The position numbers and the translations under genes are program-made. From Selaginella moellendorffii (Eukaryota > Plantae > Lycopodiophyta), in assembly GCF_000143415.4 (NCBI RefSeq), contig NW_003314277.1:2361834-2370330 (forward strand): a stretch of 8,497 nt of DNA. Reading direction: 5' to 3'. Shown one piece after another: positions 1 to 8,497 of this stretch. The notes beneath the pieces were generated by a model. The model made no database searches. It was given only the letters and a program-made list of their open reading frames with translations, and was not told the origin of the DNA. The stretch's first letter is position 1. Every line of letters starts with the position of its first letter.

Positions 1-1325
1 GGATGATGGAAATATTCTTTGCAATATGCCAAAGGTGATTGCCTCAAGATGGTCACTCTTTATAAGCATTATATATCATCTGCATTTTGGAAGTTTATAA
101 TAGGGGGCCTAGTATACTTTTTTTGTTGTTCATAATTTGCCCCATACCCTTACATATATGCATTTTTTCAAATCTTAAATAAGATTAATTCATTAATAAT
201 AAAATTATTTCACCCTTCTACGACAATTGATATTCCTACTTTTATCTTTGATGAAATTATCAAAAACTTCCCTATTGTGTTGTGGAAGCAAATATCTTTT
301 GACTTCTGGATGATATGATAATGATGCCAAAACAATCAAACTTGTCAATTCCACTAGCATATTATCAGGAAGGTTGTATGTATACCATGAATTCCCTTTG
401 TCATCAGCTTCAAGAGCATCACATTCCCTGTAGTAGCATAAGTTCATTTGAAAATCAGCAAAATCAACTAGAAGATTGGTTAATTCAATCACTTCCCTTG
501 TGTCCCTCCAGGTATTGTTCACTTTTTTCCTCATGGAAATAATTCAACCAACATACCAAACAAACTTCAAATGACTTCCTTCTTGTTCTTCAAACCACAA
601 GGCACAATCACTCCCAACAACAAGAGCTGTTTGTGCACTGAGATTTCTTCTTGGTTCAAAAATTGTTAGGTTATTCTTCACCTATATGAGCTGGTCTTTG
701 GAGAGAAATGGATTTCCATTTAGCTGAGAAACAATGGTTGACTTGCAGATTTTCTTTCCATCAACCAAAACTGTTGCTTCCACTTTTAATGACTCAAAAT
801 CTTCAATATGATCCCAAACAGCATCAAAAGTATGCCTCAGTTCACTTGCTACTTCAGTAGCTTCTTCTCATACTATATGTTCCTCTTATGCTCTCCAGAA
901 TTTTCTAAAACCTTGTGAAAATCCTCAAAATCTTTAGGTTTATCCCACCAATCTCTTCCAGATATGCCAAGGCCATGAAGAAGTTCTTGTGCTTTGGCTT
1001 TACCCTGAATCAGCTCATTAACTATCAGAGCATTTGTCTCCACTGAACTGTAATCCCTAAGTCTGCTACTACTCTCTTCCCATCATGCTCTATCTTTTCC
1101 TAAATATTTTCCTGTTTGCAATGAGCTTTAGAGGAAGGCAATGTACCTGCTGCCTTGCATTTTGCTAGCATGTTCATACTAGTCGCACTATGAACAATGT
1201 CAGCTCCATCATAACATTGTTCATTCCCAATCATTCCTCCTATTTTGGAGAAAAAGTTCTCACAAATGTTAGAACTGGTTCTACTAAATGGGATTGGCAA
1301 ATATGAATAGTGATCCCGGAAATAT

Positions 1326-1373
1326 CTATCTCAAAAGCAAAATTAACAAAAGAAAGATATATATGAAACATAC
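1326..1373 (-). other. Spliceosomal intron, 48 nt (GTATGT...GATAG)
   Basis: Canonical donor GTATGT, T-rich body with an in-frame TAA. Removal gives ATC AG|A TAT TTC CGG, i.e. ...VLLI-R-YFRDHYSYLPIPFSR, in frame with ORF 1100-1300. Confidence 0.8.
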
Positions 1374-2618
1374 CTGATTAGAAGGACAACAAAGTGACAT
1401 GATAATTGAATGTCCAAGAAGGTTTCCTTGCTGATGAATTTGTGTTTCAGGTTCCACTTGCTTTCCTTCAGAATCCACAACCTCCATAAACAAAAGAAGA
1501 AGGACACCATTGATGCAGCTCTCACTCACTCTCCAAGGCTCAAGTACGGGTGCAAAAAGATAACAATATATGTTGCCACCATAGCAAGATAAGTTCCAGT
1601 TCCCAGCATACATAAAGGTCTTCTATATGTTGTTTCTCACATAATCAAAAGACAAACTTGCACTGGCCTGCTACAAAGTTGCTAAGCAGCACCCCAGTTT
1701 TGTCTATTAGAGTGCCTGACATCCCCAAGTTGCAGTTTGTGTTTACTATGAAAGTCTTCAAAAACTTCCCAAATGTCATTCAAATGCACAAATTCATCTC
1801 CCAGAAACAATTTCCTTATTCAACTATGCAATGGATTGATCAGCTTCTTCCCATTATGCACATAGTCTTGATCATGTATCAAAATGTTCCCTGTTAAGTT
1901 CCACTTTCCAGAGAATAGCCACCCTAACCAAGGTACAGAGTAAGTTCCTGTTGTTATATCCCCTAGACTCATGTCTTCAAGCATTAGTTTATGCCATCTT
2001 TGATCTCCATCCAATGAATGGCCAATCAAGGGGCCAACAACATTGTGAAGGTGTTGTCCCCATATTTGATGGATCGAGTTCCATTGTTGTTGAACATCTG
2101 AAGCTGTAAACCAATTGCAAGTAATCTGAATAGAGAGAACCAAACACGGCAACTGTCTATGCAATGGATTAACCATCAACACTCGTGCATAGTGAGCTTT
2201 CTCGTTGTCTAGAAAATCCTGAGTGATCTATTGATAACCTACTTTTCCATTGCCAACCTTCACAACAAAACCATTCACACACTTGTGACCCTCCCCCTTC
2301 TTTCCACAAAACCCAAGCAAAGCATCATCACGAGCAATCCATTTGATCACCCTTTTAATAACAGTTTCATCTTCTACAATCAAAACAAGCACACTCCCTA
2401 GCTTGAGCTGTAAACTCTCTATCTTGAACTTGTAAACCTTAGAAAAGTTCAAAAATATCTCAGATTGTAAACCTATTGTGTATCTGAAGTTTGTTCTCAT
2501 GTCACGCTTTGTTGTTGACAAACTTGGCAATCCAAGGTTTAAGTGAAGGAAGTTGTTAAGCCTACTCCCCCCCCACATTTGTGTTACTCAGAAAATCCAT
2601 TTCATGGTTTCATGGTAC

Positions 2619-2663
2619 CTGTTAAGAGTGTAAGGAAATAACTTTGAATAAATAAAAAAATAC
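2619..2663 (-). other. Spliceosomal intron, 45 nt (GTATTT...CTTAACAG)
   Basis: AG|GT at both ends and a very T-rich body. Removal gives GM-R-YHETMKWIF, in frame with ORF 2228-2578. The length is a multiple of 3 with no stop, so read-through cannot be excluded. Confidence 0.65.
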
Positions 2664-3281
2664 CTCATTCCTTATTTTTTCCTAGTTATTCCCTACAGCA
2701 AACCTTGCATCACGTGAAGAACCGTCTCCTTGCCCTCGTATTTGCCTTGTTGCCAAGCTTGTTTGAGGTTAGAGGTGAATTTTTTGATATCCTTGTCAAT
2801 GGTGCTTTCCTTCAAAGATTCTTTAAGCTCTAGTAATGAACTGAAAGAGTTGCTATCTTGCATCTTGTGGTCGATAGTTCCTCTATTCTTTGCTTGCACT
2901 AGCCTAGCCTACTGCTATCTATGTGCTCAACTATAGTCATGTAGTCAAGTCTCATGCCACACCTCTTCAATCTTTATCCTTGTGGTATTGTTGCTTTGCT
3001 TTCCCGTAAAGCATATTCTTTGAAGTCACTACAAGCTGGTATTGTCATACAAAACTTGCACTGCTTGCTCTTGAATCCACAAATGTTGTTTGTCACTTTC
3101 AAACACTATTTTGATTTGAATGTTTTGTTAACAACAACACCATCTGCTGCTGCTTTGAAGTTTGGATCACAAAACCAACAACCTCCTTCTTTTACATCTT
3201 GGAGAAAAGGATGAACATTCACAGAACTCAAACTATATTTGTAATAATTTTGCTAATATCCAAAGCAAAGTTTTTCAATTC

Positions 3282-3350
3282 CTATCAACATATAACAGAT
3301 TATACTATATAAGCAATCACACTATGTAAAGCATATGAAATGCTAGTTAC
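3282..3350 (-). other. Spliceosomal intron, 69 nt (GTAACT...GATAG)
   Basis: AT-rich. Phase-1 removal gives TCA A|GA ATT GAA AAA CTT TGC, i.e. ...PDESS-R-IEKLCFGY. Confidence 0.7.
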
Positions 3351-3413
3351 TTGAAGACTCATCTGGAGATGCTATAAAGTTTTGAGAAGAACTACTTGAC
3401 AAGACTCTTTTTC

Positions 3414-3474
3414 CTAAAAAAATTTAAGCGACACATATTATTAACTTTACAAAAACTAAAATGCAATTTCTTAC
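3414..3474 (-). other. Spliceosomal intron, 61 nt (GTAAGA...TTTTTAG)
   Basis: Near-consensus donor AG|GTAAG, poly-T acceptor and AT-rich body. The following 63-nt exon is open (GKRVLSSSSSQNFIASPDESS). The upstream exon is frameshifted, so the phase cannot be verified. Confidence 0.7.
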
Positions 3475-3555
3475 CTCGTGTGATATAGCTAAGGAGGTTT
3501 CCTTGTTCTTATGTTAGTGTTTGCAACTTGTGCTTCTTTCTCAACCAGTATTCTT

Positions 3556-3645
3556 GTGCTTATTCCTAGAAATGTGAACCACCAGATTGTTCAAGAGACT
3601 CCTGGCAGGAGGAAAAAGCATTAATGTCTTCTCACAATGCTCGCA
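3556..3645 (-). other. C2H2 zinc-finger motif 2 of the transposase (C-x2-C-x19-H-x5-H)
   Basis: Uninterrupted translation VYCEHCEKTLMLFPPARSLLNNLVVHISRNKH. Confidence 0.7.
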
Positions 3646-3891
3646 ATAAACCCAAATGTTGTTCTTCCTCTAAAAATTTCCTACACTTGGTTTGTAGAGA
3701 GTGAAGCTAATGTTGTTCTTATCGCAAAACCTTTTCACAATTCCATTCATCAGCTTCTCCACTTTGTTTTGTGTTTCTTCACAATTAGCAAGTTCAGCAC
3801 CTTCATTAGCACCCTTAATAGAACTTTCCACATCAGCTTTTTCCTAATCATTTTTCTCCCACTGCAGCTGATTTTCCATATAGTTTGCTTC

Positions 3892-3976
3892 ATGCCTAGC
3901 TCCACTACAGTGATTTGAAATGAAATTGTAACAGGTGTTCTTTTAGGCCTCCTCAAACAATTCCACACTCCTGACA
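3892..3976 (-). other. C2H2 zinc-finger motif 1 of the transposase (broken by a stop and a frameshift)
   Basis: IMCQECGIV* followed, in a shifted frame, by NFISNHCSGARH (H-x5-H). Same pattern as finger 2. Confidence 0.6.
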
Positions 3977-4577
3977 CATGATTTTGAAGTGAGCGCATCC
4001 ATCCTGGTCATATGAAAACAATTCAAACTTGTCTTTCCTCCCTTTTGCTCTTAGCTTTCTCTCATTTTGCTTGAACAATCTCTTCCAATCATGCATCTCT
4101 CTAGCTGAAGCAAGTTTGGAATTCAAACCAGGTAAAAATCCAATTGGATCTTCTTCATGAGCTTCACTGGTTGTTGTTGAAAATTGCCCCTCTTGAATTG
4201 GTTCTACTACTACAAGATTAAGCATATAAACCAGAACTTCAGCTCCAAAAAACGAATATCTCTCCTACCTACATATCATTGCAAGGGAAAGGGCACCCAA
4301 GAAGACAAAATCACTCTCAACAAGGCCTCAATCTCATCTGAAACAATAGCTTTGCGGAGTTGATGATAAGAACACTCCTTTTAAACCCTGACAAAACCCA
4401 CAAGCTTCTTTTGATCCCTATCCTCTACATACACAATAACATCACACTCCATACCTACTACGCTTGAGATCTATTGCCCTCTACAGCCTGCTACTATAGA
4501 GAGCCCTAGAGGAGCTTTGCCTCCTCCCCTACCCGTATGTATGAAAATTTTCAAATTAAACTCAACCCTAAGACCTG

Positions 4578-4591
4578 TATATATATATATA
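4578..4591. repeat. (TA)7 microsatellite
   Basis: TATATATATATATA read directly. Confidence 0.95.
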
Positions 4592-4650
4592 GTTTGCATC
4601 CAGAATAACCCCAATTTATACATGCAGATGATCTATATAATTATATAAGA

Positions 4651-6101
4651 GTGACTACCTCGAGGTGACTACTGACTTCATTGATGATGTCTTGATCCAC
4701 TCGAAGGGGACATGGGAAGAACACATTTGTGATATTCGTAAAGTGTTAGATTGGCTACAAGAAATTGGTTTAAAGCTGAAGTGGTCAAAGTGTGTGTTTG
4801 GGTTCAAGGACACGACTTATCTTAGGTACCATATTTCTCGTGAGGGTTTGCAAGTTGATCATAACAAACTTGTAGCTATTCTAAAGTTCCCTACTCTAAA
4901 GTGTGTGAATCATGTGTAATGCTTCCTAGGCAAGGTGCAGTATCTCAATTGTTTTGTGGATCATCTTTTTGATTGCATTGCACTATTGCAAGTGTTATTA
5001 AAGTCATCAATGTCATTTTTCATTTGGTCTGTAAACTATAAGTGGGCGTTCATGGATCTCAATGAGCTATTGACGACTCCTCCGGTTTTAGCATATCCTA
5101 ACTACACTCAACCTTTCATTTTACGCGTGGATGCTTCTGATATTGGTCTTGGAGGTGTATTGATGCAAGAGAGCCCCAAATGTGCTTAGTTAGCGCCATT
5201 CCATTGTATAAATAAACTGTACATTACAATCGGTGGAGGTAAACTACTTCACAACAAAGAACGAGTGTTTAGCAACAGTCTGGGGTTTTGAGAAACTTCA
5301 TGCATATCTACATAGTTCTCAGACGTTACTGAAAGGTGATCATGTTGCCATTACTTCATTATTGAAGTAGAAAGATTTCGTTAGTTGTATTGCTCGGTGG
5401 GCTTTGAAGCTTCATATATATGATTTTGATATTGTTTATCACCTAAGGAGTTTTATGGCTGATGTTGATGCCTTTTCTCGGGCTCTTCTTCCTTCTTTGC
5501 TCTCTTCTCATATTTCTAACAAGCTTATTGCTCTAGCATCTGTGAATTTTCTAGACAAGGATTCTATGCTGTCAGCAATTGTTGTACTTGACGTTTAGTG
5601 TCCATAAGATGCAGAGCAAGATTTACCTTCTCTTGATGAGGTTCATGAAGCTCAAAACATTGAGCCATAGATTTAAAGGTTTCGAGATGGGTTTGAGAAT
5701 CTTGCATCACTTGCTGATGACCTACTATTCTGGCATTTACATTCTTCATATCGCCTTGAAGATGGCCTTCTTTATTTCGTGGGATAAATCCTGATGATCA
5801 TTTATGACTGATAGTGCCTTCAATCTTTATTCCATGGTTTCTCTATGCTTACCATGATTCTCCTGTTCTAAGTGGGCATATAGGACATCGTCGTATGAAG
5901 GAGAAGCTGCACAGGTCTTTCTATTGGCCAAAGATATGACATAATATTATCCAGTATGTGCATAACTATGTTTAGTGTCAAACTCGTAATACTCCCCCTC
6001 GTGTTATGGAAGGATGATTGGAGTCAATTGTAATTCCTCGTCCATTTGAGTTAGTGGCATTTGATCTTATGGGACTTTTTCCATGATCAACTACGAATGA
6101 G
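4651..6101 (+). mobile_element. Ty3/Gypsy LTR-retrotransposon pol fragment, copy A (C-terminal RT, RNase H, integrase zinc finger, start of integrase core); degenerate and truncated at both ends
   Basis: RT: DFIDDVLIHS, LKLKWSKCVFG. RNase H: PVLAYPNYTQPFILRVDASDIGLGGVLMQ, KNECLATVWG, ADVDAFSR. Integrase: YHDSPVLSGHIG...FYWPK...CQ (HHCC remnant) and RPFELVAFDLMGLFP. The order RT-RH-INT identifies Ty3/Gypsy rather than Copia. Multiple stops; no LTR or gag visible. Confidence 0.93.
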
Positions 6102-7684
6102 CCATTCCACCAGACCATTTGATTGTGGATGATAAGCACTTGTGAAAGTGTGGTGTATCCCCAACCAAGACGTCAAAACATGAAATGCCTCAGCCATAAA
6201 TGCGGGACCATTATCCAAAAGAATCAGCTCTAGACAAGAATGTTGGAACACCACTCGATTGAGGAGAAAGTATCCAATAGTAGTTGTAGAGGCACTAGCA
6301 AGAGCACTAACTTTTACCTAACGAATCAAGTAGTCAAAAGCAATAATAACATACTCATTGCCAGCAGTTAACTATGAAAAAGGTCCCATAAGATCAAATG
6401 CCACCAACTCAAATAGACGGGAAACTGCAATTGACTCCACCGTCCTTCTGCAGTACAAGGGGGAGTATTACAAGCTTGGCACTAAACGCAACTACACACA
6501 TACCAGATAATATCACATCACATCTCCAGCCAATAAAAAGACCTGTGCAGTTTTTCAGTTACACGACAATGTCCCATATGCCCACCTAGAACAGGAGAAT
6601 CATGGTAGGCATGGAGAAATTGCGAAATAAAGACAGAAGGCACCACCAACTATAAATGATTATTAGAATCCGTCCCCAAAAAATAAAAAAGGTTGTCTTC
6701 AAGGCGATATTGAGAATGTAAATGCCAAAAACGCATCTCAAACCCATCTCAAAGCTTTTGAATCTCAGTGACATAGAATCCTTGTTTAGAAAATCCACAG
6801 ATGCTGGAAAAACAGGCTCGTCAGAATCATGAGAAGAGAGTGGAGAAGAAAGAAGAGCTCAAGAAAGGGTATTAGCATTAGCCATAGAACTCCCTAGGCG
6901 ATGAACAACATCAAAATCATATATCTGAAGCTTCAAAGCCCATCAAGCAGTACTACTAATTAGGTTCTTTCACTTCAATAATGAAGTAACGGCAGCATGG
7001 TCACCTTCAACATTTAAGAACCATGTAGATATGCATGAAGTTTCTCGAAACCCCAGACTACTGCTAAACACTCCTTCTCTATCATGGAGTAATTCACCTC
7101 TGTTAGTTGTAATGTACGGCTTATATACACAATGGGATGGCGTTGACCAAGCACACTCAGGCTCTCTTGCATCAACACACCTCCAAGACCAATATCAGAA
7201 GCATCTACATGCAAAAAAAAAAATCGAGTGTAGTCAGGATATGCCAAAACCAGAAGAATCCTCAATAACTCTTTGAGATCCATGAACGCCCACTCATAAT
7301 CTAGAGACCAAATGAAAGATGATGTTGATGACTTCATCAATGCTTGCAATAGTGCAGTGCGATAAAAAAGATGATCCACAAAACAACTGAGATTCTGCAC
7401 CTTGCCTAAGAAGCACTGCACATCATTCACACACTTCGAAATAGGGAACTTTAAAATAGCCACAAGTTTGTCAAGATTAACTTGCAAACCCTCACGAGAA
7501 ATACAATATCCAAGATAAGTTGTGTCTTTGGACCCAAACACGCACTTTGATTGCTTCAGCTTTAAACCAAAGTCCCATAGCCGACCCAACACATTACAAA
7601 CATCACAAATATGCTCGTCTTATGTCCTCTATTAGTGGATCAAGACATCATCAATGAAGTTAGCAATTATCTCTAGCATATCGC
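4651..7684. repeat. Long imperfect inverted repeat: arms ~4651-6092 and ~6366-7684, spacer ~270 nt
   Basis: The reverse complement of 6366-7684 aligns with 4651-6092. A hand count over ~158 nt starting at 4681 gave ~32 mismatches (~80% identity). Confidence 0.9.
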
Positions 7685-8497
7685 AAAGAACCTCGTCCAT
7701 CATATGCTAGAAAGTTGCTGGAACATTGTTCAAACCAAACAGCATCACCAAGAACTCATACAAACCAAATAATGTATGAAAAGCAGTCTTAGGAATATCT
7801 TCTTTAGCCATCGGTACTTGCCAGTACTTAGAAGCAAGATCTAGCTTGGTGAACCAACAACTTTGCCTCAAATGATCCAAGAGATCAGTAATGTGAGGGA
7901 GAGGGTACACATTCGGGATCGTCACTTCGTTTAATAAACGATAGTGTTCAAACCAAACAGCATCACCAAGAACTCATACAAACCAAATAGTGTATGAAAA
8001 GCAGTCTTAGGAATATCTTCTTTAGCCATCGGTACTTGCCAGTACTTAGAAGCAAGATCTAGCTTGGTGAACCAATGATTTCGCCTTAGATGATCCAAGA
8101 AATTAGTAATGTGAGGGAGAGGGTACACATTCGGGATCGTCATTTCGTTTAATAAACGATAGTCAATGCAAAAACAAATACTCCCATTAGACTTCATCAC
8201 AAGATGAGGTTCACATGCCCAAGAACTCTATGACTTCTGAATAACACTCTTCTCTAACATCTCCTTGACGTTTGTATGTAAAATTTTGATCTCTTTGGGT
8301 GACCGACGACGAACAACAACCTTGATGAGACGAGCATCCTCAGTTGGAATCAGATGATGTGTGGCAATCTTGGCCCCAGACGATAGGTCAAATTCAAAGA
8401 GATCAAAATAATCCTTCATGAGCCGGTCAACTGCTGCAACACAAAAATTGTTGGAGGGATCAGAAAAAGGGAAGAGTAGAACAAAACGGAAACATAG
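6093..8497 (-). mobile_element. Ty3/Gypsy LTR-retrotransposon pol fragment, copy B (RT, RNase H, integrase up to the catalytic E); degenerate and continuing beyond the window
   Basis: RT: RRRSPKE...[60 protein letters not shown]. RNase H: VDASDIGLGGVL, EKECLAVVWG. Integrase core: FDLMGPF...LDNGPAF...SAYHPQSNGLVE, with D (6215) and E (6107) 36 codons apart (D-35-E). Confidence 0.95.
7727..8162. repeat. Tandem direct duplication of 218 bp within RT (7727-7944 and 7945-8162)
   Basis: Both units run TGTTCAAACCAAACAGC...TTAATAAACGATAG with 10 substitutions and no indels. This explains the near-identical ORFs 7707-7925 and 7931-8200. Confidence 0.97.

Follow-up and report, generated by a model that had tools for sequence, protein, structure and literature searches.

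Introduction

P-type transposons have a classic place in animal genetics, and surveys of plants have reported little of them. In 21 species of the green lineage, P-type miniature inverted-repeat transposable elements were found only in Chlamydomonas (PMC9641971), and in a Pfam-based analysis of 1,007 plant genomes, which included a screen for P elements, recently active clusters belonged only to seven other superfamilies (PMC12973397). The stretch of DNA analysed here (the window) comprises 8,497 nucleotides of the lycophyte Selaginella moellendorffii (contig NW_003314277.1, positions 2,361,834 to 2,370,330 of the forward strand) and raises the question of whether such a transposase can be at home in a spore-bearing land plant. 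An initial annotation, made from the sequence of the window, had recognized in it the catalytic core of a divergent, P-like transposase devoid of the THAP domain. Our analysis leads us to conclude, with good confidence, that this core belongs to a full-length, dead, autonomous cut-and-paste DNA transposon at 43-4664, whose transposase of about 1,300 residues stands in the P element/THAP9 group as a deep branch without THAP. Here, we describe the core, the family to which it belongs, its fold and the ends of the element, and we weigh the other readings that this evidence allows.

The catalytic core

All searches with translations of the window were made piecewise, on stop-free pieces, with the exons left unjoined and unmended. 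One frame of the minus strand, running from 2587 to 1103, contains in order the five motifs that had been noted: EDET, with the first catalytic aspartate (D1), GHSLDGD, with the second (D2), DYVHNGKKL, which holds the D(2)H motif, NRQNW, and SNICENFFSKIGG, with the catalytic glutamate (E). As the initial annotation had it, the set lies in a single frame once an intron of 48 nt is removed. This intron has GT..AG borders, and its splicing gives ...LLIR|YFRDH... at a place where intact relatives have LLMRLFRDQY and LLIKLFRDRH, restoring a motif that is conserved among them. The distances between the catalytic residues, estimated at first as about 120 (D1 to D2) and about 234 (D2 to E), were measured as 122 and 232 residues, respectively, the latter being divided into 46 residues from D2 to DxxH and 186 from DxxH to E.

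The core is interrupted by five in-frame stop codons located in the exons, and no frameshift was found within 2587-1103. Two of the five stops occur at codons that specify Q or R in relatives, a pattern that would fit the C-to-T decay of a silenced, methylated repeat. The similarity of the core to a wider family is far beyond chance, since its stop-free pieces match in colinear order a family profile built from an alignment of 30 long members: 2231-2587 with an expectation value (E-value) of 1.4e-31, 1823-2227 with 5.1e-50, 1685-1819 with 4.2e-10, 1346-1525 with 2.8e-20 and 1103-1330 with 3.5e-18. Frame 2 was also considered for 1329-1622 and was ruled out, the profile picking the frame 1 pieces 1529-1636 and 1346-1525. 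The range originally proposed, 1100-2618, holds for the catalytic core, whereas the coding region is wider, extending from about 4453 to about 208, and lies in a whole element with both ends present.

A family in plants and animals

A word-based protein search with the 135-residue piece containing D2 returned, within the length window of that search, two short fragments, whose contigs provided the loci L001-L007; L001-L006 are one locus in several JGI metagenomes, and L007 comes from a 300-kb ENA contig. The size of the family was taken from an exhaustive HMMER search, for which three sequences of the D2 region were made into a profile: at least 584 clusters (at 50% identity) at an E-value of 1e-3 or below, 324 at 1e-10 and 45 at 1e-30. 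A length of 1,000-1,150 residues is common among the proteins, and many clusters hold tens to hundreds of near-identical members. Among the 30 long members, D-E-T of AEDET, S, G and D of SDGD, D and H of DxxH and E of CE..FS are invariant; the three acidic residues on which the initial annotation relied are, in fact, invariant or nearly so in these relatives.

The named plant members come from the liverworts Calypogeia fissa, Riccia sorocarpa and R. fluitans and from the fern Adiantum nelumboides, and the named animal members from a brittle star, a mussel, a hydrozoan, a coral and a sea spider. On the basis of these sequences, the family is now seen in spore-bearing land plants and marine animals. 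No seed plant occurs among the named family matches, which is suggestive only. Named members are annotated as hypothetical or unnamed proteins, apart from one UniRef entry (Riccia fluitans) called ‘Transposase’.

In a quick FastTree tree built on 184 rows and 140 columns of the D2 region, with an arbitrary root, all five rows of known land-plant origin, namely the window, Adiantum, Riccia and two of Calypogeia, fall in one clade of 28 rows with a local support of 97. The metagenomic element at L001 is also found inside this clade, and the proteins of Clytia and Amphiura are elsewhere in the tree. This topology may point to a plant lineage, but it is only a hint, because the region is short and the root arbitrary.

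Additional domains were observed in a few members. P0042 carries a C-terminal Tudor domain similar to that of PTM/DIR17, P0270 and P0274 carry an Ulp1 peptidase domain, and the protein P0313 of the sea spider Nymphon carries a YqaJ/viral alkaline exonuclease domain and may be a fused gene model. At locus L008, a DUF7869 gene (12655-13923) adjoins an intact family member of 1,079 residues.

The fold of the enzyme

A comparison of structures, of the kind suggested at the outset, was made with AlphaFold2 models of two full-length relatives, P0019 (mean predicted local distance difference test score 84.5, with the core above 90) and P0197, a protein of the plant clade (mean 83.4). In VIA-align, both models find their best match in 6p5a, the Drosophila P transposase: P0019 with Z 27.3 and a root-mean-square deviation of 4.8 Å over 407 of 442 residues, P0197 with Z 27.1 and 4.5 Å over 412 of 442. 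The lower matches are far below these values, being Transib (13.0), RAG1 (11.4) and Hermes (8.8) for P0019, and Transib (12.1) and Hermes (9.0) for P0197. Foldseek likewise ranks 6p5a and 6pe2 at the top for P0019, with an E-value of 8e-11 and a TM score of 0.68 on the target. These results support the P-like reading of the initial annotation. Residues 145-643 of the P0019 model are aligned with 134-566 of the 6p5a chain (128/134-566 over both models), and the match thus takes in the helix-turn-helix (HTH) as well as the RNase H fold with its helical insertion domain. In the models, the insertion region pairs with the GTP-binding insertion domain of 6p5a, a match of fold from which any dependence on GTP would be a prediction.

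The catalytic residues are placed in the P0197 model as expected from the P signature string (PMC8230255). In particular, D269 is in strand beta1 (264-272), D388/D390 come just after beta4 (382-387), D434-x-x-H437 comes just after beta5, at the start of a helix (435-447), and E621 is in helix alpha4 (618-630).

Profile evidence from individual relatives goes in the same direction. P0133 passes the Pfam model of the P-type HTH (PF12017; 23.7 bits, cut-off 23) with residues 135-188, and P0123 gives a weak match; in P0133 the HTH is upstream of the D2 region (residues 304-433), and by position it would be equivalent to part of window 2231-2908. Two sea-spider (Nymphon) proteins, P0313 (49.4 bits) and P0315 (33 bits), pass PF21787, the N-terminal part of the P-type RNase H domain (cut-off 24.6), at D1. 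Both clearly belong to the family and show 37% identity with P0197 between the D1 region and the DxxH motif. Adiantum P0009 matches the same model under threshold (E-value 0.0022). Furthermore, by protein-language-model features the core stands next to clusters of P transposases (score 0.96).

Ends and target-site duplication

The element is bounded by imperfect inverted repeats of about 43 nt, with a local alignment score of 46; 500 shuffles gave 19.7 ± 2.5 and a maximum of 30. The copy lies within the reverse transcriptase (RT) gene of a Ty3/gypsy retrotransposon. When window 1-42 is connected to the sequence from 4673 on, the product aligns gaplessly to an uninterrupted gypsy copy at 7625-7735 (reverse complement), and this alignment to the empty site fixes the position of an 8-bp target-site duplication. 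A duplication of 21 nt was also considered and was rejected, 8 bp giving the gapless empty site and agreeing with the related element described below.

The gypsy pol fragments at 4659-6092 and 6366-7676 (RT, RNase H and integrase) are the two arms of a large inverted duplication and are 76-85% complementary to each other. Only one of them has the P-like element, at its outer edge, and the other arm therefore represents the empty site. The segments 7707-7925 and 7931-8200 are a tandem duplicate of part of the gypsy RT gene, with two open reading frames (ORFs) alike at the start and at the end.

The related element at L001 (1173-8210, 7,038 bp), which stems from a eukaryote, has the same terminal motif at both ends as the element of the window. 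Its inverted repeat of 15 nt, CTCGGGGGGGTCACT, is perfect, and so is its 8-bp duplication, ACAATTAC, which lies at the same distance from this motif as in the window. The ends of the window element read CTCAAGATGGTCACT and CTCGAGGTAGTCACT, and the motif shared with L001 is CTCG..GGTCACT (ends CTCG..GGTCACTCTT). Perfect repeats together with a perfect duplication suggest that the L001 insertion is recent. About 2 kb downstream of the transposase gene of L001 are without explanation.

The plant clade includes an uninterrupted ORF at locus L009 of Calypogeia fissa (GCA_965154635.1; 6001-10590, 1,529 residues), which is flanked by an inverted repeat of 36-40 nt (1728-1767 and 11839-11874). This repeat contains TCACTCTT, which is also present in the repeat of the window. 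No clear duplication was found at the alignment edges of the L009 repeat. Judging from its sequence, L009 is a candidate for a still-active liverwort element. A second inverted repeat was looked for at L007 and L008 and was not found.

These observations bear on another reading, in which the stretch would be no mobile element but a host gene in decay or, as with THAP9 in vertebrates, a domesticated transposase. Some relatives do have long intact ORFs, lie on contigs of transcript size and bear the annotation of ordinary hypothetical proteins. The copy in the window, however, has inverted repeats, a target-site duplication, an interrupted retrotransposon gene around it and many stops, the L001 insertion has perfect ends, and many clusters consist of tens to hundreds of near-identical members; a host gene is thus very improbable.

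Organization of the element and of its gene

The features of the element, of its gene and of the flanking DNA are collected in Table 1. The gene is read as a pseudogene of nearly full length, with about 1,300 codons, since tblastn coverage extends from 3204 to 244, the family profile is matched colinearly and an N-terminal extension opened by an ATG precedes this part; the size of about 1,300 residues proposed in the initial annotation is about right. In tblastn, residues 1-991 of P0197 cover the window from 3204 to 244, with the best segment from 2908 to 1082 (39% identity, 616 residues, E-value 4e-131), and residues 780-991 map to 852-244. The window pieces match the family profile colinearly from profile position 17 to 963. 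Within this range, the region 2231-2908 matches positions 89-142 (E-value 0.0017) and 168-288 (E-value 1.4e-31), the pieces 1685-1819, 1529-1636 and 1346-1525 match positions 430-580 in order, and the pieces 876-1082, 685-867 and 208-543 match positions 661-963.

The N-terminal stretch resembles by eye the N-termini of the L007 ORF, P0009 and P0006, the tblastn match of the L007 N-terminal ORF being limited to 3965-4126 (39% identity, E-value 1e-7). A Pfam scan of the extension at 3109-4453 gave no match. In both the window (3956-4453, minus strand) and L007 (7892-8632), a stretch of about 80 residues is followed by a zinc-finger-like motif, C..C...H..H, before the shared core; long N-terminal regions are also present in P0009 and P0006. 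The Cys-rich module that follows in the window gene sits where P transposase carries its THAP domain, and its motif occurs also in P0019, P0043, P0197 and L007.

The C-terminal part contains a beta domain similar to the BAH domain, at about 271-633 of the window (minus strand), residues 853-982 of P0197 and residues 836-943 of P0019. The models match here Arabidopsis EBS (Z 7.0-7.7), Neurospora DIM2 (Z 7.3) and mouse DNMT1 (Z 6.7), scores that are borderline, yet recur in two independent models.

Table 1. Coordinates of the transposon, its transposase gene and the flanking DNA in the window.
Feature	Position	Strand	Evidence
Complete decayed DNA transposon bounded by terminal inverted repeats, 4,622 bp; transposase gene on minus strand	43..4664	-	Repeats, 8-bp duplication, empty site
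Terminal inverted repeat, gene 3' side, starts CTCAAGATGGTCACTCTT	43..85	+	Local alignment
Terminal inverted repeat, gene 5' side, starts CTCGAGGTAGTCACTCTT on minus strand	4622..4664	-	Local alignment
Left 8-bp target-site duplication GTGATTGC	35..42	.	Empty-site alignment
Right 8-bp target-site duplication GTGACTAC	4665..4672	.	Empty-site alignment
Coding region of the decayed transposase gene, interrupted by introns, stops and frameshifts; about 1,300 codons	208..4453	-	tblastn, profile, eye
ATG opening the N-terminal stretch MECDVIVYVEDRDQKKLVGFVRV, then KECSYHQLRKAIVSDEI	4451-4453	-	
N-terminal extension with Cys/His-rich stretch CAHFKIMCQEC (about 3956-4000)	3109..4453	-	L007 match, eye
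Cys-rich module (C..C..C, then IP, conserved F.)	2977..3105	-	Weak colinear match, profile positions 17-48
Coiled coil and probable HTH (MWGGSRLNNFLHLNLGLPSLSTTKRD), followed by the first strands of the RNase H fold, including D1	2231..2908	-	Profile
EDET (D1)	2363-2374	-	Frame reading
RNase H strands with D2 and D(2)H motif	1823..2227	-	Profile, E-value 5.1e-50
GHSLDGD (D2)	2003-2023	-	Frame reading
DYVHNGKKL (D(2)H motif)	1841-1867; DYVH at 1858-1867	-	Frame reading
All-helical insertion domain with NRQNW and FISKETFLDIQLSCHFVVLLIR	1374..1822	-	Profile, models
NRQNW	1694-1708	-	Frame reading
Intron, 48 nt, GT..AG	1326-1373	-	Sequence and phase read
Helix alpha4 with catalytic E	1103..1325	-	Profile, E-value 3.5e-18
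SNICENFFSKIGG (catalytic E)	1235-1273	-	Frame reading
In-frame stops in exons (n=5)	TAG 2228-2230, TGA 1820-1822, TAG 1682-1684, TGA 1637-1639, TGA 1526-1528	-	Frame reading
C-terminal part in shifted frames: linker and BAH-like beta domain (about 271-633)	208..1082	-	Profile, tblastn
Ty3/gypsy RT sequence, left flank	1..42	+	Alignment to 7625-7735
Ty3/gypsy pol (RT end, RNase H, integrase), right flank	4665..6092	+	Pfam RVT_1, RT_RNaseH_2

Weighing the assignment

Several observations speak against placing the element in the P group or against the reconstruction of its ends. The Pfam scan of ten pieces of the window gave nothing meaningful, and most intact relatives have no Pfam match at all, PF12017 included. 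In sequence searches of the PDB, both phmmer with the D2 piece and hmmsearch with the 30-sequence profile returned chance matches only and missed 6p5a. By Pfam, no THAP domain was found in the window pieces or in the scanned relatives. The distance between D1 and D2 is 122 residues, compared with 73 in the Drosophila P transposase. At the ends, GTGATTGC and GTGACTAC are identical at 6 of 8 positions, so the duplication is imperfect, and the palindromic CCTCGAGG abuts the right repeat, leaving the exact end uncertain by 1-2 bases. Finally, the closeness to P holds for solved structures. Kolobok, Zisupton/KDZ, Novosib and Dada are superfamilies without one, and nearer kin may be found among them.

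The absence of THAP in these scans agrees, at the same time, with the initial annotation, which had called the transposase THAP-less. The comparison with the P profiles of Pfam that it had proposed was positive in three relatives, by PF12017 for P0133 and by PF21787 for P0313 and P0315, and negative for every piece of the window. PF21788 and PF21789 matched none of the scanned members, PF21787 none of the window pieces, and the eight ORFs of L001 gave nothing meaningful against Pfam.

The strongest competitor is that the family has been catalogued already, or would be better placed in Zisupton/KDZ or Novosib, superfamilies with 8-bp duplications whose structures are unsolved and might look P-like. 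Zisupton does make 8-bp target-site duplications (PMC12730594), Novosib is mostly plant-associated (bioRxiv 10.1101/2021.09.26.461848), and in language-model features the core matches best (score 0.98) an unnamed cluster that is most frequent in Basidiomycota, a group rich in KDZ elements. Zisupton/KDZ elements also resemble the present family in their large transposases and in the Ulp1 peptidase domain that occurs occasionally among its relatives, as in P0270 and P0274. An 8-bp duplication, being common to P and hAT elements as well, does not discriminate Zisupton/KDZ. The Pfam KDZ model, on the other hand, matches none of about 50 scanned family proteins, 30 of which were examined at E-values up to 10, whereas two P-specific models are passed by some members; Zisupton/KDZ is set apart here by these Pfam models and by the match to the P structure. 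As for Novosib, a broad screen yielded only 10 transposases, compared with at least 584 clusters in the present family. We regard this alternative as unlikely, and a THAP-less branch of the P element/THAP9 group as the best explanation of the element.

A possible mechanism

On the analogy of the solved P transposase, the transposon would work as follows. The transposase would bind the inverted repeats of about 43 nt through its N-terminal Cys-rich module and the HTH, and the coiled coil would pair the two ends of the element. An RNase H-fold site, split by the all-helical insertion domain of about 190 residues, would then cut and rejoin the DNA by means of the D of EDET, the D of SDGD and the E of CENFF, with the help of the D(2)H motif. 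Integration would yield target-site duplications of 8 bp. The copy of the window landed in the Ty3/gypsy RT gene and was later killed by stops and by frameshifts in the C-terminal part. The BAH-like tail might, by reading chromatin, steer integration.

A broader proposal can be made only tentatively, and we hold it to be doubtful: that the family is an uncatalogued, eukaryote-wide THAP-less sister lineage of P/THAP9, with a BAH-like tail steering integration towards particular chromatin, which spore-bearing land plants (a lycophyte, a fern and liverworts) have retained, perhaps by vertical descent, and which may still be active in liverworts.

Significance

The family is largely invisible to the Pfam models on which surveys of plant transposons such as that of the 1,007 genomes cited above are based, and for this reason they would miss it; repeat annotators would probably leave it unclassified. 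A family profile would improve the annotation of transposons in lycophytes, ferns, bryophytes and many marine invertebrates. In addition, the family offers natural variants for two questions, namely the P-type insertion domain in an enzyme without a THAP partner and a BAH-like tail directing integration.

Comparison with known systems

Kolobok and hAT transposons share with P elements a C/DxxH motif and an insertion domain, and the element of the window could in principle belong to either. Kolobok elements make TTAA duplications and usually carry, in all lineages but Kolobok1, a zinc finger between C/DxxH and E (PMC9587614). The present family shows neither of these characters: the duplications GTGATTGC/GTGACTAC and ACAATTAC are of 8 bp, which fits P and excludes Kolobok, and the family consensus has no conserved Cys/His cluster between DxxH and E. 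The hAT superfamily, represented by Hermes, resembles the family in its 8-bp duplication, its C/DxxH motif and an RNase H fold that contains a helical insertion, and Hermes is among the fold matches of both models. Its Z of about 9, however, compares with 27 for P, and no hAT dimerization domain (Dimer_Tnp_hAT) was found by Pfam. From D2 to E, the core of the window has 232 residues, whereas Hermes has about 324. A Kolobok or hAT origin is, therefore, largely refuted, and we give it hardly any probability.

With the P superfamily (P, 1360, Galileo and the vertebrate THAP9/Pdre), the resemblance extends to the order of the domains. In both, a DNA-binding module is followed by a coiled coil, an HTH, which is a probable one in the family, a split RNase H fold and then an acidic stretch, with an all-helical insertion of about 190 residues, the DDE triad and D(2)H right after beta5, [C/D](2)H at this place being part of the P signature string (PMC8230255). 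The distance from DxxH to E, 186 residues in the window, is 192 in the Drosophila P transposase and 199 in human THAP9 (PMC8230255). The ends agree too, the P family having terminal inverted repeats and target-site duplications of 7-8 bp (PMC3698922), and the fold match, at Z 27, covers about 410 of 442 residues. The P superfamily is further characterized by GTP as a cofactor and by a 17-nt stagger of cleavage at the ends, both of which would be predictions for the present family.

There are differences, too. The family lacks THAP, a domain restricted to animals according to a review (PMC7776569), and has another Cys-rich module at that place, to which a further N-terminal extension is added in the window gene, the L007 ORF, P0009 and P0006. 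Its proteins have about 1,000-1,500 residues, compared with 751, and end with the extra BAH-like domain; their identity to 6p5a is 13-15%, beyond detection by HMMER. Its hosts include a lycophyte, a fern and liverworts. Taken together, sequences and models depict not a new mechanism but the architecture and, presumably, the chemistry of P elements, in a form without THAP, with a longer spacer between D1 and D2, with a BAH-like C-terminal domain and with spore-bearing land plants among its hosts.

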